Notes under the pieces: model-generated
What the model was told of the DNA's origin: nothing
Databases searched by the model: none
The model's input: the letters and a program-made list of their open reading frames with translations, nothing else
Translations under genes and position numbers: made by a program
NCBI GenBank assembly: GCA_964247055.1
Contig: OZ176051.1
Coordinates: forward strand, 6,324,001-6,388,000
Reading direction: 5' to 3'
DNA: 64,000 nt
DNA from: Paragordius varius
Lineage: Eukaryota; Animalia; Nematomorpha
Shown: in pieces, positions 16,090-63,786 of the stretch
How the letters are laid out: each line of letters opens with the position of its first letter
Numbering within the stretch: position 1 is the stretch's first letter

Positions 16090-16450
16090 ATAGAATCGAT
16101 TGCGCAAGACGTATATTGTTGTAATCATATTCGGTTACATTTCAATTTATCGCACTTTGAACCACACGCTCTTCTGGATTATTCTATTACTATTATGTTG
16201 GAATTTATGAAAGGCAGGCGGCGAACAATTCGATATTATAAAGATTTTTTCATCATTCAAAAATACAGCATCTTTCTCCAACACACCACATTTAAAAGCA
16301 TTTACATACCATTCGGGTCTTTAACGACAAACTCATGGCATAAAGCATTCTGTAAAGGAGAGATTTGACAAATTTTATTTAATTTATCCTGTGATAACCG
16401 TCTATCGAAGCAGCCTCTGCCTTCCGCTAAATTATTAATAAACGGTTAAA
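16090..16450 (-). pseudogene. Possible decayed Tc1/mariner-like transposase fragment
   Basis: Coding-like composition; the broken frame KDAVFLNDEKIF..QHNSNRI loosely resembles the VxFSDEKxF first-Asp region. Weak support. Confidence 0.25.
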
Positions 16451-17220
16451 TAATAACTCGATATGTTTTTTGTTTTAGTTTCATCCTAGTTTATATATAA
16501 CTTTGAACATATCACATAATTTTACTGCTTAGTTATTCAAGCCGATTTTATATTATCGTAAATTTTCAATAATACGATATTCCTAATGATAAAAATATTA
16601 TTTGCTTCGCCCAATTATTTTTATTTCGTCCTAAAATCGATTTTTTGGATATTTGATGGCATAAAAGCAGATTTTTTTAAGGGAGTCTACATCTAAGATT
16701 ATAAATATCATAAATATTTTGCCGAAATGTAATTAAGGATGCAATTCAATGATAAATTCTACCAAAAATTTTATTTAGCACAATGCTAATTTTTGATATG
16801 ACGAAAAGCACTATTTTTATTAGATGACCCGTAAGGCCCGAAACCAAATGCACCATAGAAATCTAATGAATACTTTTGTTATATATTCAATCTTATTTTG
16901 TGCGATGTATTATCATCATCTATATACTAGCTCTTCAGATGAAAACATCATACTCTGGGTGCTTTTTTACACTTAAAAACTAATAAAGTGAAATATTTTC
17001 AATTCATGGTAATTGCTTCATATTGAAAGATCGATTTAGCACATCTCATTCTAAATATAACTGGTGCAAGCCAAATGCATCAATGTAAAAAAAAATATTT
17101 AAATATATTATAAATTTTAACTCCGAAGATTTTATTTTCGGCTCAGCTAAATTTGGCCAGTATTTTGGAAACGCAAAGGAGCCGAGATTACGTGATAAGG
17201 ATCAATATATGGTCTTAACA

Positions 17221-24391: not shown

Positions 24392-24455
<64 letters not shown>

Positions 24456-27400
24456 GGAACTTTAGTAGAGAGTGAGAAAATCTGAAGGCTGCCGTGCTAA
24501 AAGCATTAATTATGGTGGCATCCTCATTTTCATCATAGCCTGTAAAGTAACCTGTGTGACTTAGGCGTAAACCATGTTTTCGTAAATCATGTTCCCCAAA
24601 AACTTTTGGTAAATATTCCTTATACGTTATGTGCTGTATAACCGCGGCTAAAATCCTTCTAGTTTCTTGGAATCTAAAATTTGATTGATTACATTTAAGT
24701 CAAAATATTTTATATCTTCCATTCACATTTTTCAAAAAGATAAACTACAAAATTTCCCTTCTTACATGATTGTAATATATCATTCAAATTATTTTTATAA
24801 AAAGAATATATTATTATATGAACAAACATTTTTTCATCGCTCCAGTGTGGGTTTTGTTCCCACAATTTTTCGGCCAATCGATTGTGCTCCCGGAGGAATA
24901 CAATATGCATCGTAGTCAACGGAGTATTTTCATTGCTTCGCATTTCGCCTTAATTTATGTATAAAACAATGAATAAATTTGCCAACATATTTATTTGTCT
25001 ATTTAAAACGATTTTTCTATCATGCATGAAAAGATTATAATCAAAATATTAATATTGACACCTATATAAGTTACGATAAATTAACATTCCAATTGATTTT
25101 TTTAATAAAGCATGGGTTTTTTTTGCAATTTAAACTTCTTTTACTACCCTTTGTCATCAACTTAAAGTTATAAGAATCTGTGTGGATTAATTATCCTCAG
25201 GTTAAAATATAAATCAAAACATTTTCTTGAAATATGTATATATATATATATACCAGCCATAAAACATGGATGCTTTTTTACACTTTGTATGAGACATTCT
25301 TCAATCACTGATTGATTTGATAAGGGGAGCAATGGTTTTCTCCTATGATCAAATGGGTGCGGTAACACTTTTAACAGGCCTTTAGTTTGTGTCAACAGTA
25401 AATAAACGAAATAATAATATAAATGTGGTTTATTAATTTAAATATTTTTCATAATTTACCTTTATGAAAGAGACGAACTTCATGAGCTTCTTCAGGCGTG
25501 TTCCCATAAACAGTAGAGGCATCAATGTAATTTGATAACTGATTTATCTGTTGCCTGGCCCCTTTTTATTATATTAAAAGTTTAATTATTATAAATTTAT
25601 ATGGCTTGTAGAAAATCTAGACCAATTCCCAAACAATCCGTTTCAATATTTTATGCTCATTTAAAACATGGGTTCCGTTTCCCAAATGAAAAATCTAAAA
25701 GACTATGCTAGCATCCTTCAAATATTTGTCAATTAAAATTTTGTATAAGTGTACTGTACCACTTTTTACGCTTATGAATAAGTATAACTCACACACTTGT
25801 AAATGTAAATTGTTAAAATTCGATTTTAATAATTTAATATGTTAGAAAAATTGGAATTAAATTGTTAAATTATAAATTTAACCCATTTTTCCCACTATAT
25901 TTTATATTAAACGCATGATAAATATGTTTGAGTGCTTTTGACTGAATGATTATTTTTATAAGCGGTTACAGTCAAGGGAAATGATAACCGGTCAGAACAA
26001 ACCCTAGTCGCAATATGTAGTTTTTTTTAAAATTAAGGCTACCTAAATTGCAGGAAAGCCCGACTCCTGGTAAGGAACGCATAGCTTGCATGCAGTTTTG
26101 ATCATGCTGACTGTAGAATTCGTCATCGTAGGGTAATTTCAATCCAAAACATAGTGGATGTTGACCCTTTATATTGGGTGGACAACAGTTTAATCTTGGG
26201 TATCGATAACCTATGATTATTTTGAATAATAAAATAATTTATATGCATAAAATTCAATGTTTTATTTCTAAGGTTATTAGTTATCAGAAACTTATTTAGG
26301 AATATATGGATATTAAAGCTGTGATAATTCAAATTTTACATGAAATTAGGAACCACTGTTGAAAATATCTAAATTTTATTTTAAAATTATCTTATTTACA
26401 TTAGAGAATATTAAATGTATCTTCTATTAATACACCAAAATGTTTTAATAATTTAGATTAATTGATATAATTACCAGTTGGCACAGGAAAAAGCGTTATA
26501 TCATGATCAATTAATTGACCAAACGACGTCATCATAACAGTTAAATGATCATGTTCTATGAACTTTGTTGGCAAACAAGTCGTACTTATGATACGAGCGT
26601 TTGGCAGATCATCCCCATCCACAGATCTTCGGATTTCACTAACACCTGTTATAAAAATATTTCTTAAAATTAACTAAATTGTTAAAAAAATAGAAAAATT
26701 AGTCAAAATAAATAAATATTCAATACCATCATTATAAACGGCTGGTATTAAGCGTTGTGGAGGCAATTCAGCCATTCCCCAAGTAGGATGCTTTAAATTG
26801 TTACAATGGCCTTCGATTGTACGGTAATTTAAGGGACACTCCCAATGTAAAACTTCTTCTTTTAGTGGGCATTGGCCTAAAAATGTTCTTGAGACATCAA
26901 GTTGATCCAAGTAGTCTGATATTTCGTATGGTCCCAATTGATAGCTGTAAAAAAAATCAAACCTCAAATATGGATAAAGTAAAATTGCTAAATTATAAAT
27001 TTAGTCTAACACTACATTTGATTAATTTCCTTAAATGGCTTTTGGATCTTTACAAGATATTAATCAAACAAATTTTTTATACATCTTTTTAACGTTTGTA
27101 TTTATCTGGAAAACTATATTATTTCGCCTGATTTATTTATACTTTTTTGTAAATCATTTGGACAATTTTGAATATATGTTAATTTTTACCTTAGTTTTTT
27201 GGCTAGGATTTGTGAGGCTTTGTCTTTAATCATAGCATATTTAGAGTATTGGACATATCTATTTCTCGGAGGCTTAAAATACCCTCTTCGATGATCTTCT
27301 TTAACAACTAATTAACAATTTGGATGATTTATAATTAATTTAGATAAAAAATTAATAGTTATTTAACAATCGACGATTAATAAACTGACCTTTTATTCTT

Positions 27401-28661
27401 ACCTTAAAACAAAATAAATCATAAATTTAAACTATTTTAAAATAATTTAAATATAGTGATAATTTATCATCTCATGCTTCAATTTTTAAAATCCGATAAA
27501 AGGATTGAATGTTATAAGGGTATAATTGTCGGAAAATCTGGCGGTCATCCATAATAAAATAAATAGAAATCAAAACGTGCCAACAGCTGATTGTCTTTTG
27601 GGTATGAAGGTGCACAATAATGTTTGTGGTATCAATTTTTCTTATTTTCAGATAAAGCGTTTTTGGTAAATTTTTATATACCATTTACACTTCAAATTCA
27701 CCCTTTAAAAGTTCAAATTTATTCTAAAATAAATTATCGTTTTTTAAGATAAAAAATTGCCTATATTTTTTTATAATTTTTAAAAAAATAAATTTTTGTT
27801 TAAAATTAAATTATTACGAAAAAAATAAACTATGCCATTAAGATATATTGATTATTAATGATGAATATTAGCCCGAAAACACATATTTATTTTTTAGGGT
27901 GTTCGAATTGTTCAAGGGTAAATTCGAATTCTTCAAGCGTGAATATGAATTATAAATGGTATATTAAAATTATCACAAACAAGGGTCATAACTTTAATGC
28001 ATAATGATTAGTACATAATCGAATTTTTTAATGCAGGTAAAATTGATCTTGTCAAAGATTTTTTGTTCTACTCCCGTTCCATAGTAATGAAAAATATATT
28101 TCTTAGAATAAAAAGTTAATTTATGTTCATATGTCAAAGAAGCGTTAAACTAATGAAAAGACATGCTTTGTTTATTATTATAAATTTCATGCTTTTGATC
28201 TAAAAATTCGGTAATCAGTAATGCTCGTGTAAATGGAAACTGTATCTGGACTGTTAAAATATTCGATTCCATGCAAAAGTTTTAACATTATTTAAGTGAA
28301 ACTCATGCGACCGTGTTATTATGAATATTCAGAATATCAGCTGTGCGGCGCTTATTTTCTAATTTGCTTAATTTCTATTTTTTTGTTTTTTATCGTCCAT
28401 CCATCTACCTAAAAACTTGAGAAAAAATATAACAGATCCCGAAATTTGACAAGCTATATTACATATAAAGCTATGGCGTTTAAAAAATTTACCTAGATCA
28501 TACACTCCAGATGACCAACTGCGTTCCAATCGGTTATACCATTTCATGGCGGTATCAATCGCATTTTCAACATCATAATTTGTAATAAACTCGAATTGGC
28601 ACTTGTCTGATATAAGCGAAATGTATATAAGAATTTGTAAAATAAAATATCGTAAAGACAT
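22156..28661 (-). CDS. Secreted animal heme peroxidase (peroxidase-cyclooxygenase superfamily, peroxinectin/chorion-peroxidase-like), about 13 exons
   Basis: Hydrophobic leader at 28661 ([18 protein letters not shown]). Exons include 26944-26727 ([17 protein letters not shown]), 26645-26475 (FGQLIDHD, distal Gln/Asp/His), 26210-26043, about 25561-25461 ([18 protein letters not shown]), about 24949-24824 (RSNE..REHNR, distal Arg and ester Glu), about 24674-24461 ([18 protein letters not shown], proximal His), about 23573-23411 ([10 protein letters not shown]), about 23266-23085 ([15 protein letters not shown]), and a last exon ending DFEFWRE-stop at 22156. The junction from exon 1 to the 26944 exon is unresolved. 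Confidence 0.9.
24394..24448. repeat. (AT)n microsatellite, about 27 units
   Basis: Read directly; lies about 12 nt inside the intron after the proximal-His exon of the peroxidase. Shorter (AT)n runs occur near 5775, 55026, 60478 and 63117. Confidence 0.95.
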
Positions 28662-29739: not shown

Positions 29740-30480
29740 CTTCCTAACCATTCCATTTTCACCATTAACCAATTATTACCGTATCATCCATTCTTCCTCT
29801 TTATCCTTTCTTCTTTAAACTGCTCCCAACCGTCTCCTTTCTTCTTTGACCATTGCTAATCGTTTCCTTTAATCTTTAACCATTGATAGCCGTTATCTTT
29901 AATCTTTAACCAATGTTAATCGTTTTCTCTCTTCTTATACCAGATCCCAACTGTTTCCACTTTTCTCAAACCAGCTTTTAACCGTTTTCTTTCTTCCTTA
30001 ACCATTGCTAACCGTTTTTTAATCTTTGTATTTTAATAATAGTTTCCTTTAATCTTTAACCCTTGGTAACCGTTTCCTTTAATTAACCCATCCTAACCAT
30101 TTCCTTTAATCTTTGACCTTTGGTAACCGTTTCATTAAATTTTTAACCTTTGGCAACCATTTCCTTTAATATTTAACCATTAATCATTAGCCATTGCTAA
30201 CTGTTTCTTTTAATCTATTACCAACGCTAATTGTTTTCTCTCTTCTTTTACCAGAAACCAACCGTTTCCACTCTTCTCAAACCAGCCTACAGACATTTTC
30301 TTTCTTCCTTAACCAGTGCTAACCGTTTCCTTAAATCTTTAACCGTTACTAACCATTTCCTTTCTTTTTTAACCATCTCCTAACCGTGTCTTTTCTTTTA
30401 TAAACAGTTCCTAACCGTTTTCATTATTTTTAATCGATTCCCCACCGTGTGCCTTCTTCTTCACCATCTTTAACTGTCTC
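29740..30480. repeat. Degenerate pyrimidine-rich minisatellite (about 30-bp unit) with a higher-order duplication of about 310 bp
   Basis: Recurrent unit close to ACCATTGCTAACCGTTTCCTTTAATCTTTA. The block TTTTCTCTCTTCTT.TACCAGA..CAAC.GTTTCCAC..TTCTCAAACCAGC occurs near 29920 and 30230. Boundaries are fuzzy. Confidence 0.8.
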
Positions 30481-31670
30481 CTTTCTTCTTTAACCACTAT
30501 TTCATTTTTCTGGAAGCGCTAAGAAAAGGATAACAACGGGAATAAAAAAGTGAACGAAAAATATATGCATTTATGGGGTTTTATTAAAAAATGTTGTTTG
30601 AATATCTGATTATAGTTTGTGTGTCACCTTTTATTTCCTAACTGTTCAATATAAATGGTGTTTTTTGACAAAAATGCAAAACTTAAATGAACCATTCTTT
30701 AAATCAAAACTCCGAAGTAATAGGTTTCGTATCATAGTATTATATAGAATTTTTTATTAAATCTTAAAGCGTTTTAAACTGTTTTCATGCGCCTTATAGT
30801 AGTATAAAATACGCTTTACAAAATTTTCAATCCTCTTTAATCATTTCTAACCGTTTCTTTTTTTCCTAACTTTAACTATTTCTAAATGTTCTGTTCCTTA
30901 TTCCCGTTTACCATTTTGTAAATACCGTCTATTTCTTATGTCGCCTACCACCATTCTCTTCCATTTTAACCGCAATTTATTACCAATCCATTTCTTCCAG
31001 TTCAAATATAACGTAATAATGAATCAATAATGATTGATAACGCATAATGAACTTTTTTAAATGATTCTTTATAATTAAATATAGAAAATATCGAAATAGA
31101 ATGCGTTTATATTTTAGGACTTTGCCAAATAGGTTATAAATTTAGTTTGCAGTTAGCTTAAAAAATATGGGCAATGCCTGCATCAGTGTCCAAACTACGG
31201 GCCTTCGCGGGAAAGTTTGGCGAATTCCACCGTAGACTAACACTTCCTTTTTTAAGAAGGAGCCATTCATGTTTAGTTTCGTCAATTTTGTACAGGTGGT
31301 AATTTAATTTTAAAAGTTAAATGTGATATTTTCTAACTACTCATAAAGGACACCGGAACTAATATCAATTGTATCTTTATTTGACATTTTTTTGTGACTC
31401 CGAGGTGAATACTTTAGTATTTTAAAAGTAGCAAATAATTTATCAATTTTTTCCATTTTTTTATAATTGTTAACTAAAATTACAATATAGATTTGATAAT
31501 AAAAAATATGGTTATAATATGAACTTTATCATTAAAACGTTTAAATTTTATACAACATAACAGCTCAAAATCAATTGTTGTAAAAATTATGATTTAATTA
31601 AAAATAAATATCAATATAGATAAGTTTTTATTATCACTATAAGCTGAATGAATTTTTATATTCATAGTCT

Positions 31671-41400: not shown

Positions 41401-44400
41401 CCAAATATGTAAAAAAGCACCGGAAAACAATTTTTTTTCTTATAAGTAGGGTTAGGTTTTTAACGAGAAAATAATGGCAAGTTTGACCGCATATAAATGC
41501 AATAATTTAGAGTTAGTAACATGATTGTAAAAAGGTGTGGTTGCTAAACCAAACAAAATAAAATCGTCAATCGTTTAAATTGTTTTTCAAACTAATTAAA
41601 AAGATAAAATATATAACCAGATTATTTAATATTAATTTGAAATAATTTCGCATAAAACTTGGGTTTAAATTAATTATAACTATAAAACCCAAACCTAACT
41701 TCAAGCACATACCCTAGGTGAATTCAATAGTTCCGTATTTTGATTTCGAGTCACATCATTTGATTGTTGAAAAGATTGATTAGTCGATTTATTTAATGGA
41801 AGGTGTGAATTATTCATTGTTTTAAGTGGTATATCACCGCCTGTGGGCGAGGATGTACCAGAGTTATTGGCTCCTTCAGAGGTTAAAGATTGATTAGTTA
41901 TTTCAAATTCTGCACGTTTTTCTTTGGCTAATAACTAACACAAAATGGATTTTTTATAAAAAAATCTCTAGTTTATTTAATTTATAAAATATATATATGC
42001 ATAATTTTCCCATCTCTACTGCTATTAGTTCTGGGCTGGCAAGTGTTTAAGGCCTTCATGACTCAATTTTAGATGAAAAAATGACTATATATATATATAT
42101 ATATTGAAAATTATTATATCCATAAAAAAGTCTAAAAAATTATTATATTCATAATTCACTGTTAGCCTTACGAATGATTAAAACCCTTCAAGAGAACAAA
42201 GTTTTTACGCTTAAGATAAAAGCACTTCTCTATCCAAATTTTAAAAAAGAACTATAAATTTTTTTGCAACGATAGCCATGCTTTTTAATGATATTTTTTA
42301 TGTAAGCTATTTCAATTAAATAGGTTAAATTTGATGATAAAAATTCATATAGTTTTTACATTTCTATAATTTTAAATTTATAGTACTGCACAATTTTTTA
42401 ATAAATCCTGTTATTTGCTTTGCGAAAAGGAATGTTTGAAGCCTGCATGAGTCCTTTAAATTTTTGTTTTTAAACGCCTATAATTATATTTTCTCATTTT
42501 TTGTCATTTTTTATTGCGCCGCCCGTGTTTTATTTTACATAAAAGATGTTTAACTGTAATTTTTGTCAAAAATAATTTTATAAAATATATTTTTTCTCTC
42601 AAACGATTGAAAAAATGAACATTTTAAAAAGATTACCCGTTTTTCACGTAACCGCAAATCAATATTGTGAATACCCATTAGTAAACTGTAATCCATGATT
42701 TTAAAACTTTCCAGCACCTAGAAGTTAAGTGGAATAAAGTAAGTAAATTACTTTAATTCTTCCAAAATATATTTAAATAAATCATATATATGTATATATA
42801 TAAATCTAAATTACCAAGCAATCACGTTTCAGTGTTTTTATGAGAGCATCATATGTATCAGATTCAAGCATAATACCTAAAAATAAAACATATTTTAAAG
42901 GGTATGTGATTAAATATAATCCTGACACTTAAATATATTGTCTTTTTGGTGATAGTCTGCAAACTGTTGATAAAGATTTTCTTTTATTATTACCCTTACT
43001 ATTTTAATAATTTTTTAGTAATGCAAAGAGCTATCTTAATTTAATCACTAATAAATTTTATATGATATATCAATCAGTTTTATTTGTCTACAAAACTACA
43101 ATTAGACGTTAAATAACTGATCCATTTCAATGTTAATTTTCAAAAATTAATAAATTAAACATACCATCAGGATGTTTTTCCAAAAAATCCAAGTCTTTAT
43201 AGGTTGGGGTTGCTTTCATACATTCGTATTTACTGGCTTTGCGTTTAAACGTTGATCCCTTTAAATCATATTTTTCATGGATTTTTATGGATGATGGAAT
43301 CAGATTATTCATGATGAGTAAACGGATATTTTTTCCTCCACTCTAAACATTTAAAAATTGATATCATTAAATTTAAGATAATGAAAATAGAAGATATAAC
43401 TAATTATATACCTGATAACAATAGAGACCAAAAAATTTAGGTAACAAGGTGCGAGGGTTTTGATTCAAATTCTATATGTCAGAATATATAAAAATTATTA
43501 CATAAAAATTATAATTCTCAAAAAAACTCTCTAAATATTGCCCATATTACGTGTTTTATAAACTTGATAAGGTTTGAGTCTATTTAATTATGTAAATAAT
43601 CAAACATAATTTAATATAGAGGATGTGTTTTTCATTATAAAACTTTTTTATATATAATATCCTGAGAATTGTTACTAAAATGCTGGCTACCTTCCCTGAA
43701 TGTGGCTACTCAAAATATTTTATATTAATTAAAGAGTGTTTTACAGTATTTTTCCTATATAATGTTTTCATTCTAGAATAAATCAAGTATAAGTCAAACA
43801 TTTGTCCCATTTATATACCCTATAATACCCGGGTAGCACTATTTACAATAAGTTAACCACATATTGCTGAATCAATTACCAAATTTTATTATAACAAAGG
43901 AAGGGTTTAATGTAATTAATTTTCCTTTATATAAAACAAAATTTATATATCCTCACATTTTAACCCAAAATAAGCAAGCTATCTTATTACCATATAATAT
44001 CCAGGTAAGATTTCTCCTGTAAATTTATGACAAAAAATTGATTATAAAATATTAGTACTTTAAATTATATTAATGTAAGCTATTTTCTCTATATAACAGA
44101 TCATTTATATACCATATAATATCCGGGGAGCAATTTTTCCAAAAAACTAGCTTCTTTCCTTTGAACCGTTTTTAAGATGAATTCGTCATCACAAGTAACG
44201 AAAAAAACTGATCCGGAAGCACCTGGGTTTGAGAGTTCCCGTGGCGGTTGGGCACATAACGAAATCTTTGAGTAAAATATAAAATGTTAATAATAAAAGT
44301 TAGTTATTTGTAAGATACAATTTGAAAAAAAGTTAATTATTTCAGTTATTTTTCTACAAAGTATATTCATATATTTTAATCCTTAATTTTCATATATTAC

Positions 44401-47083
44401 TTACATAATTACGGTTGTATAGTATAATGGCATAAAAGTTACGCCTGACAACCATAATTACATAAGTTTATTATGGAAAAATATGGATAAAAATAAAATT
44501 GTTTAAAAAAACAAATCCAAAAGTTCACAAATAAGGAACATTAAATCATTTCTTTAAATTTTATTAATAAATATACCAAAAAATCTTCAGTTTTTATGCC
44601 AAACAATTCTCGAAAGTATCGAAAAGCAACCGGGGCGTATGTTTTGAATTTAAAATCGGCATATTCATGGGCTGCAGTTGTTGAACTCCCTTCCCTTATA
44701 TACGGAAAAAAATAAAAATTAATATTTTTTAAATGATATTATTGCTTTATTATAGTTTTATAGTGCTTTAGCTCTTAATTTATAAAAAAATCAATTTTTA
44801 TAAAATATGTGTTATAAAAATTTTCCTTTATGAGTTTAAGATTACTCTAAAATTAACATAAAATTTCATGGATATTTTGAAAAAAGATTAGCAATATTTT
44901 TTTTGACAAAACATTTTATGCATCTATTTAAACATAAAATATGGTGTTAAAGAAAGGAGGACAATACAAAAAAACTTTTTTGCGCGATCGATAAAACTAA
45001 AGTAGTGTTTATAAAAATATATGCACAAAATACAATTCCAAAAGAACCAAAACACAAAAACAGAGGAATAAATTTTATTAATTTTGTACTTGGCCACAAA
45101 TTTTAAGAGCCTAAAAAATTTGAAAAAATGCAATTTTACCTTATAAACAAACCAAAAAACAGTATTTATTCTGTAAAAATAGCAACTTTCAAAAAAATCA
45201 AAAAACTATTAAATATAATTTTTTGCGAAAAATTAATCTTTAATACTTTGGGAAAGTGACAACTTCAATCATTGTGAAGTCTTGCATGAGAACATCCCTT
45301 TGAGGTTTGGAAGAAAGAGAACCAATCGAATGATTTAAACCAAGTTGAATAGCTTGAAGTAATCGAGACGATTCAACCTATATATATAAATAGGTTTTAT
45401 GTAGAATTTTTAGATGTTTTTCAAAAATCTATGTATGTTTACTAAACTGTTTTAGCATAAGGTGTCCTTAAATAATTGATCAATTATCAAGAATTAGGTT
45501 ATATTTATTATTTCTAAAACATCGATTCGAAAAAAAGTTTTTTCAGCGCCAATATTTAAAAAGTGGTTTTGAGGAGTTTATGGTATTAAAGTTATTGTTT
45601 TAAATATTATTGTTAAATAAATATGTATAGTTGATTGTTTTTACAATATGTAAGGAGAGTATTGATCATAGAATGAACATCCAGGACAGTTAAAATACAA
45701 AAAATTGCACATTTTACATATCAAACCTTATTATAAATATACCTCGTAATGCCTTAGTAAAAGTTATGATAATAAATAGTAATAATTATGTAATTTACCT
45801 TTTTATATGTGACATTTCCTTCCTCATCAACGCGTCGATGACCAATCTTTTTTTGTCGTTCACTGATAATTTTGATGGCTTCTTTACGTGTTAATGGTCG
45901 AGGCATTATTTCGTTTTCATCTAAATTTTCTTCGCCGTATTCGTTTTCATTTTCGATTTCACTGGAAATTTTGTCATACGCCCTGTCATTTATTTCGGTT
46001 TGACCGTTAGGTACGTATGTTGTAGGGTGAGTATATGGATGCAGGATTTGATTAGGGGGTAAATAAGATGAATCTTTATCTTGCATTACCTAATATAAAC
46101 ACACATTATTCAAAGAATAACCAAGATCAGTGGTACTTAAACCAAGGCCGTAAGGTTCTTTTAATGGCTCTGAATAATTTATATTTTACTGTATGTTAAG
46201 CAGCTATGATTATATATCGGTTAATGGTGGAATGCTCTTAAGCAAGAAAATATTAAATTAGGCCCTTTTAAAACCTTTACTGCTGGTTTAAAGTGCCTTT
46301 AGATGTAAAGGTAATTGGCCTTTAATTGTATTAAGCAGCCATGAAACCTTAAACACTCGCCACACAAGGCAGCTTGATGTTGGAATTGTGTAGTTTGTAC
46401 GACTACATCTCTACTTCTAAGATGAAAACTAGTGTTACTGCCCAAAAATTTTTAAGGGCCAAGAATAATTTATTTTTTTGTCTTAAAGGCCATAATAAGG
46501 AGATAACATAGCTGTTCACATTCTTTTAATATTTCAGATAAATCAAAAAATTTAATAAATAATTTAGGACTAAAAAAGACTTTTTAGGGCCGCAATTTTA
46601 CTTAAACCATGCAAAACAGAAACATATTTGGATATTTATTTAAGAAATTATGTCTAAGGTGGCGATAAAGAGTAATTTTAAGAAATAGTTTAATACAATC
46701 ATATGGAATTTAAAATCTAAATTGATAAGCAACCGTAAATACCCTCGTTGATTTATAGTTTAGTATTTTATTTTATTAGATAAAATAGATAATAGCCATA
46801 TATTATATTGATAAAACCAAATTGTTAAAAATAATATAAACCTCTTATTAAACATGTTTTATAGAAAAAATACTTCGGACACCATTTGTTGGTAAGATTT
46901 ATCGCGAAATTTATACATATTTTTGTCGATGGTCTTTTGCAGCTCTATATCCATAGGATTGAATTCGTTTAAATCTTCGTTAACAAAATATGGATATGGA
47001 TTTCCATTGACCGGAGAAGGGGGATAACCTTTCAATTTCTCAGATTGTTTTGTATCCATCGAATTCGGTTCAGTTTGGTGCAT
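35454..47083 (-). CDS. PIP5K1: Type I phosphatidylinositol 4-phosphate 5-kinase with a long low-complexity C-terminal tail
   Basis: Successive exons translate to [136 protein letters not shown] and the type I activation loop [29 protein letters not shown]. The first ATG is at 47083 with an in-frame stop upstream. Last exon about 35742-35454. Tail exons are approximate. Confidence 0.92.
35773..35867. mobile_element. Short MITE of the same family in the last PIP5K1 intron
   Basis: GAGTAGCGTATG ... AACGCTACTG-TA inverted termini. Confidence 0.6.
40746..40863. mobile_element. MITE of the same family in a PIP5K1 intron
   Basis: TA-CAGTACATATG ... CCATACGCTACTG-TA, internal TAGTCCA. Confidence 0.6.
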
Positions 47084-47165
47084 TGCAAAAAATAATATTT
47101 GGTTTTATCACACCTTCAAAGATCCGAAAAAAATGCAAAAAAACATTTGTTGGCACTATTTTGTC
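47084..47165. promoter_or_regulatory. 82-nt spacer between divergent start codons; candidate bidirectional promoter or overlapping 5' UTRs
   Basis: PIP5K1 ATG at 47083 (minus) and FNTB ATG at 47166 (plus). Position only; no core promoter motif was identified. Confidence 0.55.
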
Positions 47166-50100
47166 ATGTCATATGGTACCCCTACTGAAAGCGATCCTAC
47201 TAGCCATGCTTTCTCAGATAACATTACGGAAACGGATTTGGAAACAGTTAAATATTTTAATGATTGCAGTAGGAAAAAGTCCGTATTCAAATATTAAAGC
47301 TTCTAAGCTCCGGAAAAAGTTTAACCTTTTTACAATATAGGTTGTCTAAACCATAATCACGTTAAATTTTTAAAAAATGGTTTGAAAGGATTAGATGCGT
47401 CTTATGAGGTAAATTTTACTGTTAAGTAGAGTGTTTAGAGGCTAGTCAAACTTGGCTAGCTTATTGGATTATTCATAGTCTAGTGATATTGGACGAAGAC
47501 ATATCTACCGAAACGCAAGAAAAGTTTTTTGAGATAAAATGATATTAGATTGATCGAATTTCTTAATTCCTGTCAAAATTTATCAGGAGGATTTGGAGGT
47601 AAGCAATTATATATTTTAGGCGGACCACATCAAATTTCGCATTTAGCAGCCACATATGCAGGCGTTAATGCACTATGTTCGCTTAAAAGCTTTAAAGCCT
47701 ATGATATTATTGATAGGTAACTAATCTTCTGGTGTTCATATTTTATTTTTATAAAATATATTAAAAATTTAAAATATGCCAAAATTTAAAATACTTTTTG
47801 TATCATGTTTATCAGTTTACATTAAAAAAATTCTATATTTTTTATGATACAAGGGCTATTTTATTATTCACCATATGTATTATTTATATTTAGTCCGATT
47901 TAATGTGCCTTATAATATTTACTTATAGAGCTTTTTATCGTATTATTTTGTCATTTTCTGGGATATTATATCACTGGGATCAATACATTAATTTCAGTCT
48001 TTTGTTTATCAAATAAAGATAGTTGGCGACCCCAAGTTTTTATTTTACGAAAAAAGATTGTTAGTATTTATTATTATATTATTATGAACCTGTATCTTAT
48101 TAAATTTATCAGGACATATGTTTTTTAAATTAATTTTAAACCTGCTTCACGAGTTATTCAAATGGTAAATTTTTCGTGGCATTAATTATTTAAGTATAAT
48201 AAATTTTGATGATGATTGGATAAAGTGTTAAGAAGTTAAATTTAAGTATATGAATATTTTCGATTATTAATGATATATGTTTTTTAATTCTCTATGCAAA
48301 TTGGTTTTTATAGGTAACATTCAAATATTTCACATTTTTATGGTATTCCTGTGCTAAAGGACTTGATTAAAAATATTAAATGTTGTGTTCTGACCACTCA
48401 GAAGTGGTAGGGATATATTAACAACGCTTGAAAAATTTTGCATATTGATCCATCAATTTATTTATTTTGTAAAATATATTCATTAATACTTTAGCCATTT
48501 GTAGGAGTTACATAATGCCAAAAGCTTTAAACTATTACCTGGTAAATATATTCTAAAATAGGATTTTCTTGAAATATCAAAAATAATGGTCCCTTAACCT
48601 GATAACTGTTCATCAACTGTTGCTTAATAACATCCAGCATTATATTTTGAATTATTGATAAAAAAAGTTTTCATAGTGTTTTTGATATGGCTTTGGCATT
48701 TTTAGCTGTTACCCTAAAAAGATTTGATATTGGATTGTTAAACAAATTTCTTGAGAGTACGCTGTAAATAAGCAAACCCCTAGCAATCAAAATACCTATA
48801 AAATATTTAGAAAGTATACCTCCAGGCATATCAAATTCTTCTCTAATTTCAAGTCAATCCAGTTTTCTGACTAAGCGAATTTTTACATATAATTATTAAA
48901 TACTTTATTTCATTTATATAACTGAAAATATGGTTAGCGGTTCGTATATATTTGCTTTACTCCTCGGATGATAATTTTATTTTTGAGATTCGTTGTGGTA
49001 AATCTATGAGAATGATTTGGTTGGAATAAGTTAGATTTTCCACCATGTTAGAATCGGGAAAATATTTTTAAATACCCGATTCCGAAAATGAGGAGCCAAT
49101 ATTCTCTTATCGATCAAAAAATTTCTGCATTCAAAATTAGCCGAAAATTCTTATTACAATAAAACCTTCGCAACACTGAAACTACTAACGTTTTAAGCGA
49201 AATTTTACAGGAACTTAGATTATTTAAACTTTAAAAATTACATTTGAATAAAGTGGAATATCTAGCTTATTTTAAATCACTTTTTTGTATTAAACGAAAT
49301 TCTACAAAAATAAAAAAATCTAATTTGATTCATTTTATTCCCGGCCCCAAATCAATCATCAATGAACCGCTAATCATATTATATCTACTATAACTATTGA
49401 AATTTAGAATTTCATAATTAATATAAGAATTCGCTCATTAAAAAACTGGACTAACTTGAATTAGAAAGAATTAAATACGTTTTAAGATATATTTTCTATA
49501 TTATAGGTATTTTGATTGCTATAGGCGTTCGCTATTTATATACCCTTGACAGATTTGTTTTACAATATCAGATATACCTTTAACATGGTAGCGTAAAGCA
49601 GATTTATTAAATTTATTTCAGATTTGATAAACTAAGGGATAGCCATATCAGAAATATTACGGTCTGATTATCAATTAGACATATTATAAATATTGTTTAA
49701 TAAAACTTTCCTTAATTTGTATAAACGTAAAATTAGATATTCTCAAATTAAACTGAGCAAAGATTCAAAATATGTTTACTTAAAATTTATGTTCAACGTT
49801 TAACAAAAATCATCTTTCAAATATGTGATACATATCTTCTATCAAATAAAATAAAAACTTCCCAGGAATTAAATTCGTACAAGCCATATTTAATTAAATT
49901 CAAAAAGCAAATTTCTTTATCAATTAATTAATTTATGGCTTTATAAGAATATCAAGGAAATTAAATACCCGTGCGGAGTTTGTAGACTAAATGTTGGATT
50001 TGATTCAATTCTCTGTTTTACATTTAAAAAATGGTGTCACAAAAATTACAAACATAAACGGCACACTCCGAATACTCAAGTTTTAAATGCCACACATTCT

Positions 50101-53100
50101 TAAAACATTCAACGACCCTATCATTTAAGCATATTGCCCTAATTACAACCTTTGAAGTTGTAAACGGGTTTACCTCTGTGCGTGACAAAGTTACATCAGA
50201 ATCCTTAAACGTGCAATTAATGCCAAAATAATAGTGCCTGAGGAAAATATTATCAGCTAAAATACGTAGTAAAACAAAAGCACATACCCATAAAACAAAA
50301 GGCTTAATTTATAAAATGGGTATAAGACCAGTTTTGACATATACCTCGAAAATCATCGCGTTAACACCAACACAAGAAAAGCGTTTTATGAGTGCAGACA
50401 TATAATACGCCTGATGTCAATACAACTAAATCCCACAGATTTTCGGAATGACATACAAATGAAGCCAAACAAATGCATCCAATTCAAAAGAATGAGATAC
50501 TACGGTCACATTGACCGTATGAATGTTATAATCTAACTAGAACCTTATTCGACATCATCACACCAGGAAACAACAAACCCGGCCATCCTCGTTTAACTTA
50601 GGGTAAAAAAATTGATCTGGATTTACCAACAACTCAAACTGCTAAAAATTGATTATAATGATAAAGTTTTTTATCACAAAAAGCTGAATAGTTAACGATG
50701 ATATACCATCAAAACTAATTGTAAACAACATCTACGACAACAATTAACTTTAAAATATTCATGAGTTTTTAAATAAAAAATAGTCATAAATATAAACCTA
50801 AAATATCAGTATTATTACTTTAAGAAACAAAATTACCTTCACAATTCTTATGGTTTGGATGGTAATAATAGCAAAAGTAACATAATAAAGATTTACCTCA
50901 AGAGAAAGCCATTGTGAAGCATATTTTATTAATATATAGTTAGATCTGCTTATTATACAGTATGATTTTAGCGTCTGCCAAACTTTATTTCAACTATATT
51001 ATAGAATTAGTTTAGCAAATGGTATAATACTAACACCTAAAAATATTCTAGACTGCACATATGAAAGAGGATTGACGCCAGAATTACACAGGCTTATGAA
51101 GGATGTTTTGCCATCCAAATTGCATATATTATAGCAATTAATTTGTATTTACGTATTTAGATGGATAGTTTTTGGGATTAAAATGGTTTATCAAATTTAT
51201 GCTAAATGAAAATAGGTCTAGTTCTAATTTTTTATTATTATTAAAAATTATTACTAAATATTTTTGACATATTAATAAATACAGGTAAAAATATTACTGC
51301 GGTTTTATATATTTATGTAAATTTCATATTTTTAACTTTATGTTTTACATTGTTAATTATTATTAAATATTCAAAATTTTTAACACATTGATAAATACCT
51401 ATATAATATATATTTGTAATATTTAAAAGCATTGTGAATGTACTGTTATAGGCCATCTAATTAATGGTAAATAAACACGTGCTATTTTTCCTACAATCAT
51501 ATGACACACACAGAAAGAAATAAACAATATAATATAATTTTTCAGATACATCAATCGTCTCCAAGATATTACAAGTATCTGAGAGTGATATTATATTCAT
51601 AATTACAATTATTTTGAAAAAAATAACGGAAAAAATTCAAAAAACGCAGATGATATTTAACACATCTCTCATCAATAAACGTATACTAGTTTCGGGTCCA
51701 TAACTCTTTATCAGTACGTATCTATTGACGAGAGTTCACTTGAAATTCTGCTATATAATATGTCATAATACAACTTTTGGCTTTATTGAACAATATGTTT
51801 TAACATGCCTTTCATATATGTTTATCATCATTTATGCATTATTTAATATTTTTGCCATATTGATAATTACAGTTTAAAATATATGTAAAATCTATATTTT
51901 TTGTTTAATTTTGTTATTAATTACTAAAATGTTTGATGTATTGATGAATACAGGTAAAATACATGTGTTGCGGATTTATGTTAGAAATTTTTAAACAAAA
52001 TACAACAATGTATATCAAAACAACCACCTGATGTGACCATTGAGAATTAGAAATCGATTAACAAAAAACACCAAGATTTATAAACCACATTTGATAAGTA
52101 ATCTATAGAATTACTAAATATTGAAATAATTAATAAATCTAAATAAATTTTTTTAGAATATAAATGCCGATATTTTTGATGTATAATTAACAAATAGAAT
52201 AATATTTATATTAATGTTGGAAATTTTTTTTGTTATTGTATTTTGAGTAAAATTTATTTTATTGTCATTTTATAACAGATTAATAATTTTGGCATGACTG
52301 ATTCCACCACTGTAGGGCTCTTGTGGATAGATTTATGACATTATATATTGATGAGGTCTTATTATGTGGTTTAGACTCTTGGTGACTATAACCGATAAGA
52401 AATTATCATAGAGTGCCAAAAAAAATTTAGATAATGTAATTAATCCTGAAAATTTACAATTTTACCGTTATTCTGATGATTATATGTGCTAAAATATAAA
52501 AAAGAAGAAACATATAATAGTATTAAAAAGTAATATTACATATACCTCCTGTATTCTAGAACTTTGCATCATAATTTTATTAGCTATTGGGAGCTAAAAC
52601 ATTCATGAAAGGACACTAAACTTACCATCCATATTGATATTACCTTTACTAAATTTGCATAAAAAATTCCTCCTGAAAATAAATCAAAAATGATTCTGCA
52701 TATTTTTTCTACAGCCTACAAAATATGAAAAAGCTATGTGCTTTCACCAATGAAGTCAATGTATCGCGTATTAATGAAGGCTAACGATTCTGAAATTATT
52801 ATAGGATTACCATTGATGAGAGATGTTCATATATCATCTGCGTTTGTTAAAAAAATCCTTTATTTTCAACTATTGATATAATTTATTTATTTAACATTTA
52901 AATCTAAAAATTCGCATCCAAATACGTACATAAATTGTTACAATGTATGCAATAGTATTACAAAAATCCTTCATAAGCCTATGTTAATACTCACGTCAAT
53001 CCTCTTTCATATGTACAGATTAATATAATTTTGACCATTTGCTAAACTAATTCCTGCATTTGGCTGACTATAAAGTAAGTTGGCAGACACAAAAATGCTT

Positions 53101-56100
53101 ACTGCATTAAGCATAAACAAATTTTTTATAGCCTTTAAAAGTTTAGGGTCGTCAATTATAATAAATGTGTTGTATTCGATTGTTAAGATACCATGTACAC
53201 ATAAAAATATTTCTGGCGCCAGGCGGATCGAGATGAGATTTTTTGATATTCCAATAATCTATATTATTATTATTATTTAAACAAGCAAATATTTAAATTG
53301 CGATCGTTTTTTTCACTAGATTTTAATATATTTATTTGTAATTGGCCTTGGGTGTCCACTTATTCCAATATGTATCGGCGTGTTACTGTCGATTAGAAAA
53401 TGTAATAATATTTGCTTAAATTTACCATTTTTTTTTATTTTTGTTAGATTATTCTTTTGAATACATAAAAGTTTATTAAAAATGGCGATCGGTGCAGTTA
53501 CATTTACCTTAAATTAATTATATTTAAAACAAGTTGTAAAATTGTTTTTTGATTGGCTCCATTTACTTCTTACTTAAAATCGGGTTTGCTTTTAAAAAAT
53601 TACTTCTGAATTTATCGTATATAATAAACATATATTAACACGGTTTTTTGGCGAATTTAAATTCTTACATGCATATCTAATTTCAAAAGTTGCCTAAAAA
53701 ACGCATAACAATCATCAAATTAAAGATTACTTAAATTCTTAAATATTAAAATTCTTTGTAACATTAATGGCATACTGGCATTTTAAAGAAAAAACATATA
53801 TTTTAATACTTTTATTGCATTTCTTTATATTTAGGGAAAATTTGCTAACCTTCTTGTACAAACTCAAGAATGTAGATGGGAGTTTTTGTATGCATGAAGG
53901 TGGGGAAGTCGATATTCGAGGAGTTTATTGTGCCTTAACTATTTGCCGTTTACTAAATATTTATCATGCCGATTTATTTGATAAAACTGCTCAATGGGTT
54001 GCAAGGTAAATAACGTATATTTGTTAATTACCTACATTTATTCCTTAATTTTATTTTTTGATTCTATTATGTTTACATATAGCAGTTTTTTTACTGATCA
54101 AACAAAAAATTTATTAAAATTTTTAGGGGCAAAATATTTGTGATGAGGATTTTTTTACAACTTTTTTTTTATATTTGTATAAAGCGTTTAAGGGCCATAA
54201 AATGCATATTTATAAATTTGACTTAATATCATGGATATTATTTTATAAGTTTTTTAAATTTATGATTGCTCTAATCTAGGGTATATAAATTAACTTTTAT
54301 ATAAATTACTTTTCTTATAAAGTTGTCAGACTTATGAAGGGGGATTTGGGTGTTTACCTGGGACTGAGGCCCATGGTGGTTTTACTTTTTGTGGATTTGC
54401 TTCGTTAGTTTTGTTAGGTCAGGAGCAATTATGCAATATGTCAACTTTATTGGTAAATATTTAAATTACTTGGTTAAATATAATCTTTTATTATTCTTTT
54501 ATTAATTTTGAGTAAAAAGGTTTTTGATATAAAGTTTTATAAAGTATACACTGTGGATTCCCCTATAAGTTTCGCCTCCTCAATATGTGTTTAATAAACA
54601 GCATCCTTATTAAATAATCAGATCATGCCGAATGCGCTTTTTCAGTATTAACCTACATCGTTTAAAGTTTAATTTACCTTTACACAAATTATGTTTGTTA
54701 GTTTGGACTCCTTAAAATCAGTAAAAATAAAATTTAACCATTTTTAGTGAGATTTTATACGCATTAACTGTAGTTTTAGTTTTCTTAATAAGGGTCAAAT
54801 GCGGATAATAAATTTTGTTTTTTCCAATGAAGAGGGTCCACTGTACATCAAACATGCCTTAACATATATTTTTAACAACTGTCCTTATTAATATTATTTA
54901 ATCATTTATTATTATGAATTTGAATTTGTTTATTTGAATATAATGGTAAATGTTTTTATAATTAAAGCAAATTCCATATCTTTAAGTCAAAACCAAAAAA
55001 ATGTCTCATGAAACCACAGCAAACTATATATATATATATATATATATATTAATTCACCCCCTGATATATAAATAAATAAATAAATGCGCATTTTAGAGAT
55101 GGTTATGTTTACGGCAAACTTCTCCGGAAGGGGGATTTAATGGCCGAACGAATAAACTTGTGGATTCTTGTTACTCTTTTTGGGTCGGTGCCGTTTTCCC
55201 AATGCTATGTGAATCGCTGTATTATCAACAAAATTTTGGTGGATTTGTTGGTTCAAAAAACACTGTTAAAAAAGATGAAACGCCCAAAATTAATCTGGAA
55301 GCAAAAAATGGAATATTAAGTATTTTATTTTTTTCAATTATAATATATTATATATTAGTTTCTTATTGATTTGATAAAAATATTGAAAATGTATTATCTC
55401 ATATCATTAAGATAGGTATTATTGGGATTCCATGGATTAAACGAAATATATCTCTATCTTTTGTTGTGTTTGTTCAGTAAAATAAAATCTTTTTCTATGA
55501 TTTAGTCCAAGTTGTTTTAAGACACCCTTTTCGGTTGGGGGCAGGGATCTGTAAATCAAGAATTTCTTTTGCAGGTAAGTCTATACTGGATCTGTCTATG
55601 TGTCCAAAATACCGAGTTCTGTTTGCCTGATAAAAGCTGTTATTGGTTCTAGTTCATTTATGATAGAATTTATCATCATATATTTTAGCATTTTGTCTTC
55701 CGTTCTTTTCATTCTCGATTCTAATGTTTTTGTGATTGCCCAGGTTTCGCAGGCGTAGGTAAGGGTAGGGAGGACACCCACTTTATAGGATTTTATTTTT
55801 TACGGTTATGTCTTTATGTGTTAATACATATCATTATAATATAAAATATCCCTTGATACTAAAAATTATTGTTTGCATTAAGCGAATTAACTTATTTAAA
55901 ATGAAGATGAAAATTGAATATTTTTTATGTTTAGTTGAATTAACTGAATTTTTTTGCAATTGTTTTGATATTCAAAAATAGGCCCTTTAGCTAGTTTAAA
56001 TGTCATATATTTTTTAATTATCGTTTTATTGCTTATTTTAGTGTCACCAAATGTGCCCGAAAAATTTATATATCTATTAGATGGCTGGATGTTTAATTCA

Positions 56101-57141
56101 GGTTGTTATATTATATTAATGATTATAAAATTAAACTTGCAATATTTCACTCCATAAAATTATAAATTATTTTTAAATAAAATTGATTGCTAATAATTTA
56201 ATTTTTGTAATTTTAAATAATTTTTTAGATAACTCTCCTATAGGATTCTAGTAGTGTATTTTTGACTATTTTTAAAATGTTTTTTGTTTTTTTATGTTTT
56301 AAAAGATGATTAGCATTCATTATATCACAGTTAAAAACTTTAGTTACAAAAGCCAACATTAATGTAAAAAATGGCTATTTTTCTGATCAATCTTATTTTT
56401 TTATGATATCATTTCTTGATATTGGTTTTAGAGGCCTTACAAACCTATATTATCCGTTGTTGCCAACATGATTCTGGTAGTCTTTTGGATAAGCCAGATC
56501 GGTATTTTTCAATTACAATGCATATTTTTAATAATGATCTGTAATCCATATATTAAATGTTATTTCCAATTTATTAGACCTCAAGATTTTTATCATACGT
56601 GTTATGCCCTTTCTGGCTTATCTTTGGCACAACATGCATTTAATGCGAAAGCATTTGTTTTTGGCGAGCCTGCCAATGAATTGGTAAAACTTAAATAGCG
56701 TTGGTTTAATTATCAGCTTTTATTATTTTTATCAAAATATGAAGGTTATTAAATTTTAATTATGCAAAATGGTTATAAAGGCTAAATAATGTTATTAGAA
56801 CTCATTAGATATGGATTCTGTGTCCAAGATATTTTGTTTTTTTTAAACAACAAAAACTTTATATCTATAAAAAAAGGAGATTAAATTTTTTGAAAGCACA
56901 CTATAGTATGTTATTTACCATATTACCTAGGTATAAGAACCTAAAACCCAATAATTTAATTATTTCTTATTTTAATTCATATATATTTTGTTTATAATAA
57001 ATTTATATTTTATTACAGAAATGTATACATCCCATTTACAATTTGGAAATTGAGGCTGAACACAAAGCTAGATCATATTTTCAAAAGTTGCATAATCCGC
57101 ATATTTCAGTGCTCAAAACTAATTCCTTGTCAACTTTTTAA
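47166..57141 (+). CDS. FNTB: Protein farnesyltransferase beta subunit
   Basis: Exons 47166-47246, 47273-47318, 47341-47408, 47432-47523 ([17 protein letters not shown]), 47549-47598 and 47620-47716 ([23 protein letters not shown]), from 53835 ([20 protein letters not shown]), from about 54324 ([18 protein letters not shown]), from about 55098 ([14 protein letters not shown], Zn ligands Asp/Cys), from about 56430 (LLDKP), from about 56578 (DFYHTCY, Zn ligand His), last exon from about 57019 to the stop at 57141. Use of a small exon at 55506-55574 is uncertain. Confidence 0.93.
48480..48830 (-). pseudogene. Decayed piggyBac-like transposase fragment in the long FNTB intron
   Basis: Minus-strand translation with stops and frameshifts: FIGILIARG, then ATVDEQL (48606-48623; piggyBac first catalytic Asp motif TxDEQL), then [14 protein letters not shown]. 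Confidence 0.6.
49950..50620 (+). mobile_element. RTE-clade LINE 3' remnant
   Basis: Broken translation [22 protein letters not shown] (Cys/His finger seen in RTE ORFs), [17 protein letters not shown], and [11 protein letters not shown] (compare RLRWxGHVxRM). Many stops. Confidence 0.7.
55596..55790 (-). mobile_element. Short RTE-clade LINE fragment in an FNTB intron
   Basis: [33 protein letters not shown] matches the RTE C-terminal motif LxYGxETWxxT. Confidence 0.75.
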
Positions 57142-63144: not shown

Positions 63145-63786
63145 TATATATAAATTTAATCTTGATATTTTTTGTGTAAACTATGTGTCCATATAAAAGT
63201 GATCAAATGGAACTCTTTATATAAGGTTTTGTCAAGATATAATTTATTAGCTAAAAGCTAGAACTTAACTTTTTCCACACAAATTCCAAATATGATATTT
63301 TGTGCAAAACTGACTGACCTTGAGAGGGAGGCGTAACTGGCGTCGTAGTTTCATACGTATCTGCCGTCATGGTGTATGTCGTAGTTTCTGGCGTCGTAGT
63401 CTCACCACCTGGAGTCGTAGTTTCCCAAGGAATGGTGTCTATCGTTTCTATAGTAGTTGTCGTTGTGTCATATTCAGGGGTTGTAGTTTCCCAAGGAATG
63501 GTATCTATCGTTTCAATAGTAGTTGTCGTTGTATCATAGCCTGGAGTTGTAGTTTCCCAAGGAACCGTATCAATAATTTCTGTAGTCGTTGTAGTTGTAT
63601 CATATTCAGGAGTCGTGGTTTCCCAAGGAATGGTATCTATTGTTTCAATAGTAGTTGTGGTTGTATCGTAATCTGGGGTGGATTCACTAGGTGGTGTAGG
63701 ATCGGTATGTATGGTAGGGATGGTAAATGTGTAAGTCGTTTCAGGTACCGTTGGGGTAACGGTTGATTGTGCCACGGTTGTTGTTA
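57330..63786 (-). CDS. 5'-truncated orphan gene: Thr-rich tandem-repeat mucin region followed by about 400 aa of non-repetitive sequence I cannot assign
   Basis: Phase-consistent exon chain: 63786-63319, about 62060-62031, 61803-61768, 61689-61657, 61584-61520, 61460-61265, 60996-60877, 59892-59710, 59495-59410, 59148-58972, 57700-57597, 57528-57330 (ends KDCPHN-stop). The first exon seen has an acceptor (TTTCTCAATAG), so the start lies outside the window. Internal coordinates are approximate. Confidence 0.7.
58161..58347. mobile_element. Foldback MITE with TA-CAGTA termini
   Basis: TA-CAGTAGTATG ... CATACTG-TA; internal inverted arms TTATTGCCAAATAGCAT / ATGCTATTTGGCAATAA. Confidence 0.7.
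63407..63670 (-). repeat. Coding tandem repeat, 4 x 66 bp (22-aa unit YDTTTTTIETIDTIPWETTTPE)
   Basis: CCCAAGGAA recurs with a 66-nt period; the unit is visible in the 63251-63775 ORF translation. Confidence 0.92.

Follow-up and report, generated by a model that had tools for sequence, protein, structure and literature searches.

The 64-kb window, which is the whole stretch of Paragordius varius DNA analysed here, carries on its plus strand a gene for the beta subunit of protein farnesyltransferase (FNTB). The traced gene has 13 coding exons measuring, in order, 81, 46, 68, 92, 50, 97, 171, 130, 223, 60, 70, 106 and 123 nt, and it encodes 438 amino acids. All 12 introns start with GT, end with AG and join their exons in phase. 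Introns 6–12 measure 6118, 317, 644, 722, 330, 76 and 335 nt. The window has a GC content of 26.9%, and it also carries a Wnt gene, a haem peroxidase gene and transposon remnants. A GC content of 26.93% has been reported for Gordionus (10.1101/2023.06.26.546503).

The 5′ part of the gene is made of six exons separated by five tiny introns. Exon 1 (47166..47246) starts with the ATG at 47166, and there is a further in-frame ATG at 47133. It is followed by intron 1 (47247..47272; 26 nt, phase 0, GTTAAA..TAG) and by exon 2 (47273..47318), which fits the family profile. Intron 2 (47319..47340; 22 nt, phase 1, GTTTAA..TAG) is the least certain of the five. Exon 3 (47341..47408) aligns without gaps to the last residue before the intron of the orthologues and is followed by intron 3 (47409..47431; 23 nt, phase 0, GTAAAT..GAG). 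The size of exon 4 (47432..47523) is identical in millipede, oyster, fish, nematode, horseshoe crab and tick. Intron 4 (47524..47548; 25 nt, phase 2, GTTTTT..TAG) leads to exon 5 (47549..47598), the size of which is shared with millipede, oyster, horseshoe crab and tick. Intron 5 (47599..47619; phase 1, GTAAGC..TAG) is 21 nt long and is thus a multiple of three. Exon 6 (47620..47716) has the same size in five orthologues. An earlier sequence-only reading had placed five GT..AG segments here, and their positions and lengths were borne out.

Intron 6 (47717..53834, phase 2) has a strong donor at 47717 and occupies an ancestral site. The same reading had described a phase-correct join over a 6.1-kb intron to an intact downstream gene, which holds: the intron is 6118 nt long and the complete model has 13 exons. 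Exon 7 (53835..54005) corresponds to ancestral exons of 84 and 87 nt that are fused, as in mayfly, shrimp and nematode. Exon 8 spans 54323..54452, and exon 9 (55097..55319) contains the LVDSCY motif. The borders of exon 10 (56042..56101) were set by eye from a WMF motif, and this is the least sure exon. Exon 11 (56432..56501) is 70 nt long in the millipede as well. Exon 12 (56578..56683), with the 76-nt intron upstream of it, contains the DFYHTCY motif, and exon 13 (57019..57141) ends with the stop codon.

Protein comparisons with orthologues were made exon by exon, and databases were queried with single exons or with a stop-free genomic stretch. Against the PDB, exon 7 matched residues 175–230 of the FTase beta subunit with an E value of ~2e-16, and the beta chains of GGTase I and II scored 2e-6 or worse. 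By this best match, the host gene is the FTase beta subunit and not a GGTase I or II beta subunit. The zinc-ligand motifs are intact (LVDSCY in exon 9 and FYHTC in exon 12). We take the ligands to be the Asp and Cys (DxC) of LVDSCY and the His of FYHTC. Like other members of the FNTB/RAM1 type (Pfam PF00432 family), the gene appears ordinary and full length, with the zinc ligands present and ancestral exon sizes. It differs from other FNTB genes in an N-terminal linker that is approximately 8–10 residues shorter and in an insertion after the core of the LVDSCY exon. A tblastn search with the N-terminal halves of eight orthologues revealed no second copy of the FNTB 5′ exons in the 64-kb window, including the inside of intron 6. 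The sequence-only reading had named a second FNTB locus as a possible refutation. A search for FNTB of related species with the genomic exon 5–6 stretch gave no candidate, a blank that carries little weight because of the query-length limit.

Removal of the five segments yields a single open frame from the ATG at 47166 to the donor at 47717. When left unspliced, introns 1–4 shift the frame and bring in stop codons, and intron 5 is in frame and stop-free in the assembly sequence. The GT..AG termini alone prove nothing, because GT..AG spans of 20–27 nt are common by chance (~12 per kb per strand in the window). The exons on either side of introns 3, 4 and 5 align gap-free to the orthologues right at the junction. 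At any one junction, the chance of finding GT and AG at both of these alignment-fixed borders is ~0.002. Each junction allows four equivalent placements at most, which gives ~2e-7 for introns 3–5 jointly.

We then enumerated every GT-AG or GC-AG pair between conserved protein anchors. For junctions 1 and 5, the proposed splice is the sole stop-free in-frame option, and for junction 4 it is the sole stop-free GT-AG option. At junction 3, the proposed splice alone preserves the sequence YECLEAS. At junctions 1, 3, 4 and 5, the conserved residues are not preserved by any canonical GT-AG splice of at least 30 nt. The enumeration also upheld the earlier statement that read-through of introns 1–4 runs into stops and that the frame needs their removal. 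Junction 2 has two alternatives, a 58-nt GT-AG intron (47283–47340) and a 34-nt GC-AG intron. A single 94-nt intron that skips exon 2 was rejected as out of frame, with a phase 0 donor and a phase 1 acceptor. Use of the TAG acceptor for intron 3 or the CAG acceptor for intron 1 causes a frameshift and a stop. An origin of the segments as repeats or transposon footprints was also rejected, as they fit no repeat family and the redundancy at their ends is 0–3 nt. There were no Rfam matches in the window.

The exon structures of orthologous FNTB genes were solved by exact protein-to-DNA matches at the fetched loci. Three orthologues are only partly informative: the termite gene is intronless, the spider model is without a normal N-terminus, and the chiton was solved for the first 90 residues only. 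The 5′ exons measure 96/68/76/92/50/97 nt in the millipede, 111/68/76/92/50/97 nt in horseshoe crab and tick, 102/68/85/92/50/97 nt in the oyster, 99/65/73/92/147 nt in the swordfish and 102/126/92/147 nt in the nematode Bursaphelenchus. The corresponding series in the window is 81/46/68/92/50/97 nt. The site of intron 1 (phase 0) is common to eight orthologues, where the intron is 37–3779 nt long. The site of intron 3 (phase 0, between YE and C) is found in nine orthologues with introns of 67–2229 nt, and that of intron 4 (phase 2) in six with introns of 65–5021 nt. Five orthologues share the site of intron 5 (phase 1, GGFG/G), at which their introns measure 62–13,496 nt. Intron 5 is absent in fish, which have a 147-nt exon, and present in the millipede, three chelicerates and the oyster. 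The sequence-only reading had matched the YE/CL junction, a 92-nt exon and a block of 147 nt to vertebrate FNTB exons, and these features were verified in the swordfish and several protostomes.

To examine the position of intron 1, we scored the residues next to it against a profile built from 102 homologues, with 388 placements each. The final seven residues of exon 1 score best when they stop exactly at the ancestral site of intron 1, and the ten residues that open exon 2 score second best when they start there. Intron 2 behaves differently. In the orthologues, the linker intron is in phase 2 in all six that have one, and it lies 73–85 nt before YE/C, whereas intron 2 of the window is in phase 1 and lies 68 nt before it. 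With a 22-nt intron 2, the N-terminal linker is 38 residues long, compared with mostly 45–50 in orthologues. The exact match in site and phase indicates that introns 1, 3, 4 and 5 are very probably old introns that shrank. Thus, the earlier proposal that ancestral introns had shrunk stands for these four and is not borne out for intron 2, which is in phase 1 instead of phase 2. Intron 2 may have slid or been gained, and it is possibly coding sequence that was intronised.

Contigs from four runs (X1, X3, X4 and X6; three studies) were aligned to 45700–48000. X1 is possibly the sample of the assembly itself and was excluded from the independent count. All contigs from the four runs are unspliced and DNA-like, with zero splice joints. 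Gap-free contigs cover introns 1–2 (X4 record 23 and X6 record 30) and intron 5 (X1 record 7 and X6 record 31). X3 record 16 spans introns 3–5 with a single gap letter, the position of which is unlisted. Gaps at unlisted positions amount to 1 nt in one X3 contig and 3 nt in one X4 contig. Depth in X4 is absent over 47394–47701, but the records were filtered and no inference was drawn from this.

Among the variants listed, the four in exons (47299, 47305, 47360 and 47480; exons 2–4) are all synonymous. The chance of this outcome is 0.002 for random changes and 0.016 for transitions. Three of the variants listed are inside tiny introns (47323, 47326 and 47601). The A>T change at 47601, seen in X1 and X3, creates a stop codon in the read-through frame of intron 5. 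As this is the sole frame-keeping intron, the stop allele argues that intron 5 is spliced and is not a coding insertion. Together with the ancestral site, it rules out a seven-residue coding insertion. In intron 2, the A>G change at 47323 gives the +5 G of a better donor. Both 47323 and 47326 are silent in the frame that continues from exon 2, and an intronised origin of intron 2 is therefore conceivable.

Overall, the gene is an intact FNTB, and its five tiny segments are highly likely to be genuine introns of the major (U2-type) class, at least four of them ancestral and shortened by deletion to 21–26 nt. For introns 1, 3, 4 and 5, we hold the same reading to be somewhat more likely still, and for intron 2 the 22-nt form is the probable one. 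Their membership in the spliceosomal class is very probable, and we infer their excision from the genomic sequence.

The splice signals are modest. Two donors are fair (GTAAAT and GTAAGC) and three are weak (GTTAAA, GTTTAA and GTTTTT). The earlier caution about the weak donors GTTTTT and GTTTAA, and about the intron 3 GAG lying 2 nt past a TAG, proved justified, and GTTAAA has to be added to the weak ones. Four acceptors of the tiny introns are TAG and one is GAG, and a run of T before the AG is seen only in intron 5. Competing acceptors are present 3 nt upstream of the intron 1 TAG (a CAG) and 2 nt upstream of the intron 3 GAG (a TAG). All five introns have A residues at −7 to −14, as is expected anyway in AT-rich DNA and with n=5. 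The U12-type donor RTATCCTT is found in none of the five. The GC content is 36% in the exons and 16% in the interior of the tiny introns. An exonic A directly precedes the donor in three of the five tiny introns and in one of the seven longer FNTB introns.

We propose that the ordinary spliceosome removes the tiny introns by pairing their sites across the intron (intron definition). The minimal signal would be the GT, a branch-point adenosine approximately 7–14 nt from the end and the AG, and a polypyrimidine tract would be short or lacking. Recognition of such introns may be aided by the exon sequence and by the difference in base composition between exon and intron. The choice of acceptor would have to be exact, with the CAG bypassed in intron 1 and the TAG in intron 3. 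Retained or mis-spliced forms would carry frameshifts or stops and would presumably be removed by nonsense-mediated decay. Introns of 69–6118 nt occur in the same animal, which implies that its spliceosome handles both size classes.

The surroundings of the locus were also surveyed for intron size. Fourteen introns of 69–784 nt were called by eye in three neighbours (a PIP5K1-like gene, the haem peroxidase gene and the gene at the right end), which is a small, hand-picked sample. Among the 26 introns traced in all, five measure 21–26 nt, none 27–68 nt and 21 between 69 and 6118 nt, with a median of approximately 90 nt. These sizes agree with two size classes, within the limits of a small and hand-picked sample. 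The sequence-only reading had put the other introns at about 55 nt or longer; the shortest of the others traced here measures 69 nt. The tiny introns are the first five introns of FNTB and are consecutive, a clustering known from one gene. The head-to-head neighbour has a first intron of 784 nt, so proximity to a promoter or cap does not force small size.

Several other explanations have to be weighed. An assembly artefact, in which longer introns were collapsed or homopolymers misread, could be imagined in an AT-rich genome with homopolymers, and the 1-nt and 3-nt gaps in two contigs lie at unlisted places. For example, with one extra T near 47327–47331, intron 2 would read as 21 coding nucleotides. 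This specific error was rejected by the gap-free X4 and X6 contigs. The collapse of longer introns, raised as a concern in the earlier reading, is likewise rejected, as the segments have the same length in contigs from three studies, gap-free over introns 1–2 and 5 and with X3 record 16 over introns 3–5. An artefact is therefore hardly credible. The 5′ part of the gene could instead be a relic, dead or unexpressed, in which insertions shift the frame, the protein being made from another locus or other 5′ exons. No transcript was seen in the runs examined, and the five RNA-labelled runs (X7–X11) contained next to none of the words sampled from the stretch (share 0.00). Nevertheless, a relic is very improbable. 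Insertions at random would not have GT..AG ends and hit an ancestral intron site in four cases, the 13 exons are without stop or frameshift, the exonic variants listed are all synonymous, and tblastn shows no other 5′ copy within 64 kb. A less drastic alternative concerns intron 2, and would leave four tiny introns: the true intron 2 could be the 58-nt form with a 10-nt exon 2 (or the 34-nt GC-AG form), or the 22 nt could be coding sequence that was recently intronised. The 58-nt form keeps the frame open, its donor (GTATTC) is fair, and the 22-nt intron is off the ancestral phase. However, the 58-nt form would reduce the linker to 26 residues, against mostly 45–50, with the loss of residues that fit the family profile, and the variants at 47299 and 47305, which lie in the part it would remove, are synonymous when read in the frame of exon 2. 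Intronisation is favoured by the silence of 47323 and 47326 in the run-on frame and by a linker that would be near the orthologue length upon retention, whereas the 47323 variant improves the donor of the 22-nt intron by a G at +5. We consider this set of alternatives unlikely, and prefer the 22-nt intron 2 in a run of five.

The remaining question is how such introns would be removed. A specialised route, with an altered U1 or U2 snRNP or a cap-proximal mode distinct from that of ordinary introns, would suit the empty range of 27–68 nt among the 26 traced introns and the position of all five tiny ones at the 5′ end of one gene. The exonic A, found ahead of three tiny donors out of five and of one longer FNTB donor out of seven, points in the same direction. 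These counts are tiny, however, and the window holds no snRNA gene. Myxobolids splice such introns with a conventional U2 and U2AF (PMC13644364), and the 784-nt first intron of the head-to-head neighbour speaks against a cap-proximal mode. Such a route is thus quite unlikely, and removal by the ordinary spliceosome is preferred. A broader reading is equally doubtful. In it, sub-30-nt introns would have arisen in a third animal lineage, the first with a non-compact genome, and a discrete 21–26-nt class at the 5′ ends of genes would be removed in a cap-proximal way or by an altered spliceosome, unlike the ordinary introns of the animal.

Animal introns have long been given a lower size limit near 30 nt. 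The sequence-only reading described introns below 30 nt as generally considered too short for the standard animal spliceosome, a view that is out of date, since they have been published in myxobolid myxozoans and in Dicyema (PMC13644364). The median intron is 27 nt in Henneguya salminicola and 22 nt in Thelohanellus kitauei and Myxobolus rasmusseni (PMC13644364). The short myxobolid introns are at conserved positions and have reduced 5′ and 3′ signals with normal U2/U2AF, and the situation in Dicyema japonicum is similar (PMC13644364). The FNTB introns share with them the sub-30-nt GT-AG form, the conserved positions and genes, the weak signals, the scant polypyrimidine tract, the arrangement of short beside short and an AT-rich genome. 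In myxobolids, however, the genome-wide median is below 30 nt in reduced genomes, whereas here five of 26 introns are tiny and stand beside introns of 69–6118 nt. Myxobolid splicing is also backed by long reads, and that of the window FNTB is predicted from DNA sequence. Ogino et al. are said to have described, in 2010, a Dicyema intron class of 21–26 nt at conserved positions. Dicyema japonicum thus has an equal size range and kept ancestral positions during shrinkage, but unlike the window locus it belongs to a compact-genome lineage. In the ciliate Paramecium bursaria, the middle half of the introns measures 23–26 nt, and most are efficiently spliced (PMC12862383). Ciliate tiny introns resemble those of FNTB in size, low GC and major-spliceosome type. 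They differ in belonging to a protist in which nearly all introns are tiny, whereas the window FNTB mixes two size classes in one gene.

The kind of intron, an ultra-short U2-type one, is therefore known, and its setting in a non-compact locus beside kilobase introns is what differs here. Both published animal cases below 30 nt are genome-reduced parasites with mostly tiny introns (PMC13644364). Five introns of 21–26 nt followed by one of 6.1 kb would mean that extreme shortening can occur without genome-wide compaction and that one animal spliceosome serves both sizes. The locus offers a run of five such introns, independent confirmation of the DNA, synonymous-only variation among the exonic variants listed, a stop allele in intron 5 and one intron in a non-ancestral phase. 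Within this one gene, it could be tested directly how ~22 nt accommodate U1, U2 and U2AF and why the shortening hits 5′ introns. Genes of this kind would be mis-annotated by aligners and gene finders that set the shortest allowed intron above 20–30 nt. No report of hairworm intron sizes was found in the literature searched, and the main text of PMC13644364 does not include hairworms.

The layout of the gene has a parallel in Schistosoma, where the first introns of sgtp2 and sgtp3 measure 31–41 nt and the 3′ introns are large (PMC4653847). Both cases combine a run of very short introns at the 5′ end with long ones at the 3′ end, in the non-compact genome of a parasite, although the Schistosoma first introns are longer than the 21–26 nt of the window FNTB. 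The usual trend is a long first intron (PMC2518113), and the layouts of FNTB and of the Schistosoma genes are the opposite of it.

In the nematode Bursaphelenchus xylophilus, the FNTB gene includes introns measuring 37, 40, and 34 nt; nematode introns are therefore already near the 30-nt mark, the lower size limit long assumed for animal introns. In the window, the introns traced in an animal haem peroxidase gene (approximately 23000–28661, − strand), whose start resembles a signal peptide, are 80–305 nt long, and none of these is tiny.

The start codons of FNTB (ATG at 47166, + strand) and of a PIP5K1-like gene (ATG at 47083, − strand) are arranged head to head and lie 82 nt apart. The identity of the PIP5K1-like gene was assigned by reading its exons, without a family search. 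The interval between the two start codons occupies 47084–47165, which leaves room for the promoter and 5′ UTRs of the pair only if these are very compact or overlap. Two segments, 46809–46822 and 47097–47110, form a perfect 14-bp inverted pair.

One exon end of PIP5K1, which reads LLPGYYM and is followed by GT, has two further copies in the following intron, near 43990 and 43820. The region concerned is 43800–44145 (− strand), and the repeats fall in families D1 and D4. The intronic copies may be decayed partial duplications or alternative donors. Intron 9 of FNTB contains an AG/GT-bounded stretch of 69 nt (55506–55574, + strand) that is stop-free and in-frame. It could be an optional FNTB exon in the variable loop, a reading without similarity support.

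A threonine-rich, mucin-like exon at 63251–63775 (− strand) contains about four 66-nt tandem repeats. The multi-exon gene to which it belongs apparently stops near 57330, in a tail-to-tail arrangement with FNTB. A Wnt gene (2685–5592, − strand) has conserved blocks separated by long low-complexity insertions. The window also carries, at 16000–18930 and 29828–30496, decayed fragments that look transposase-like on visual inspection, together with a degenerate 30-nt tandem array.
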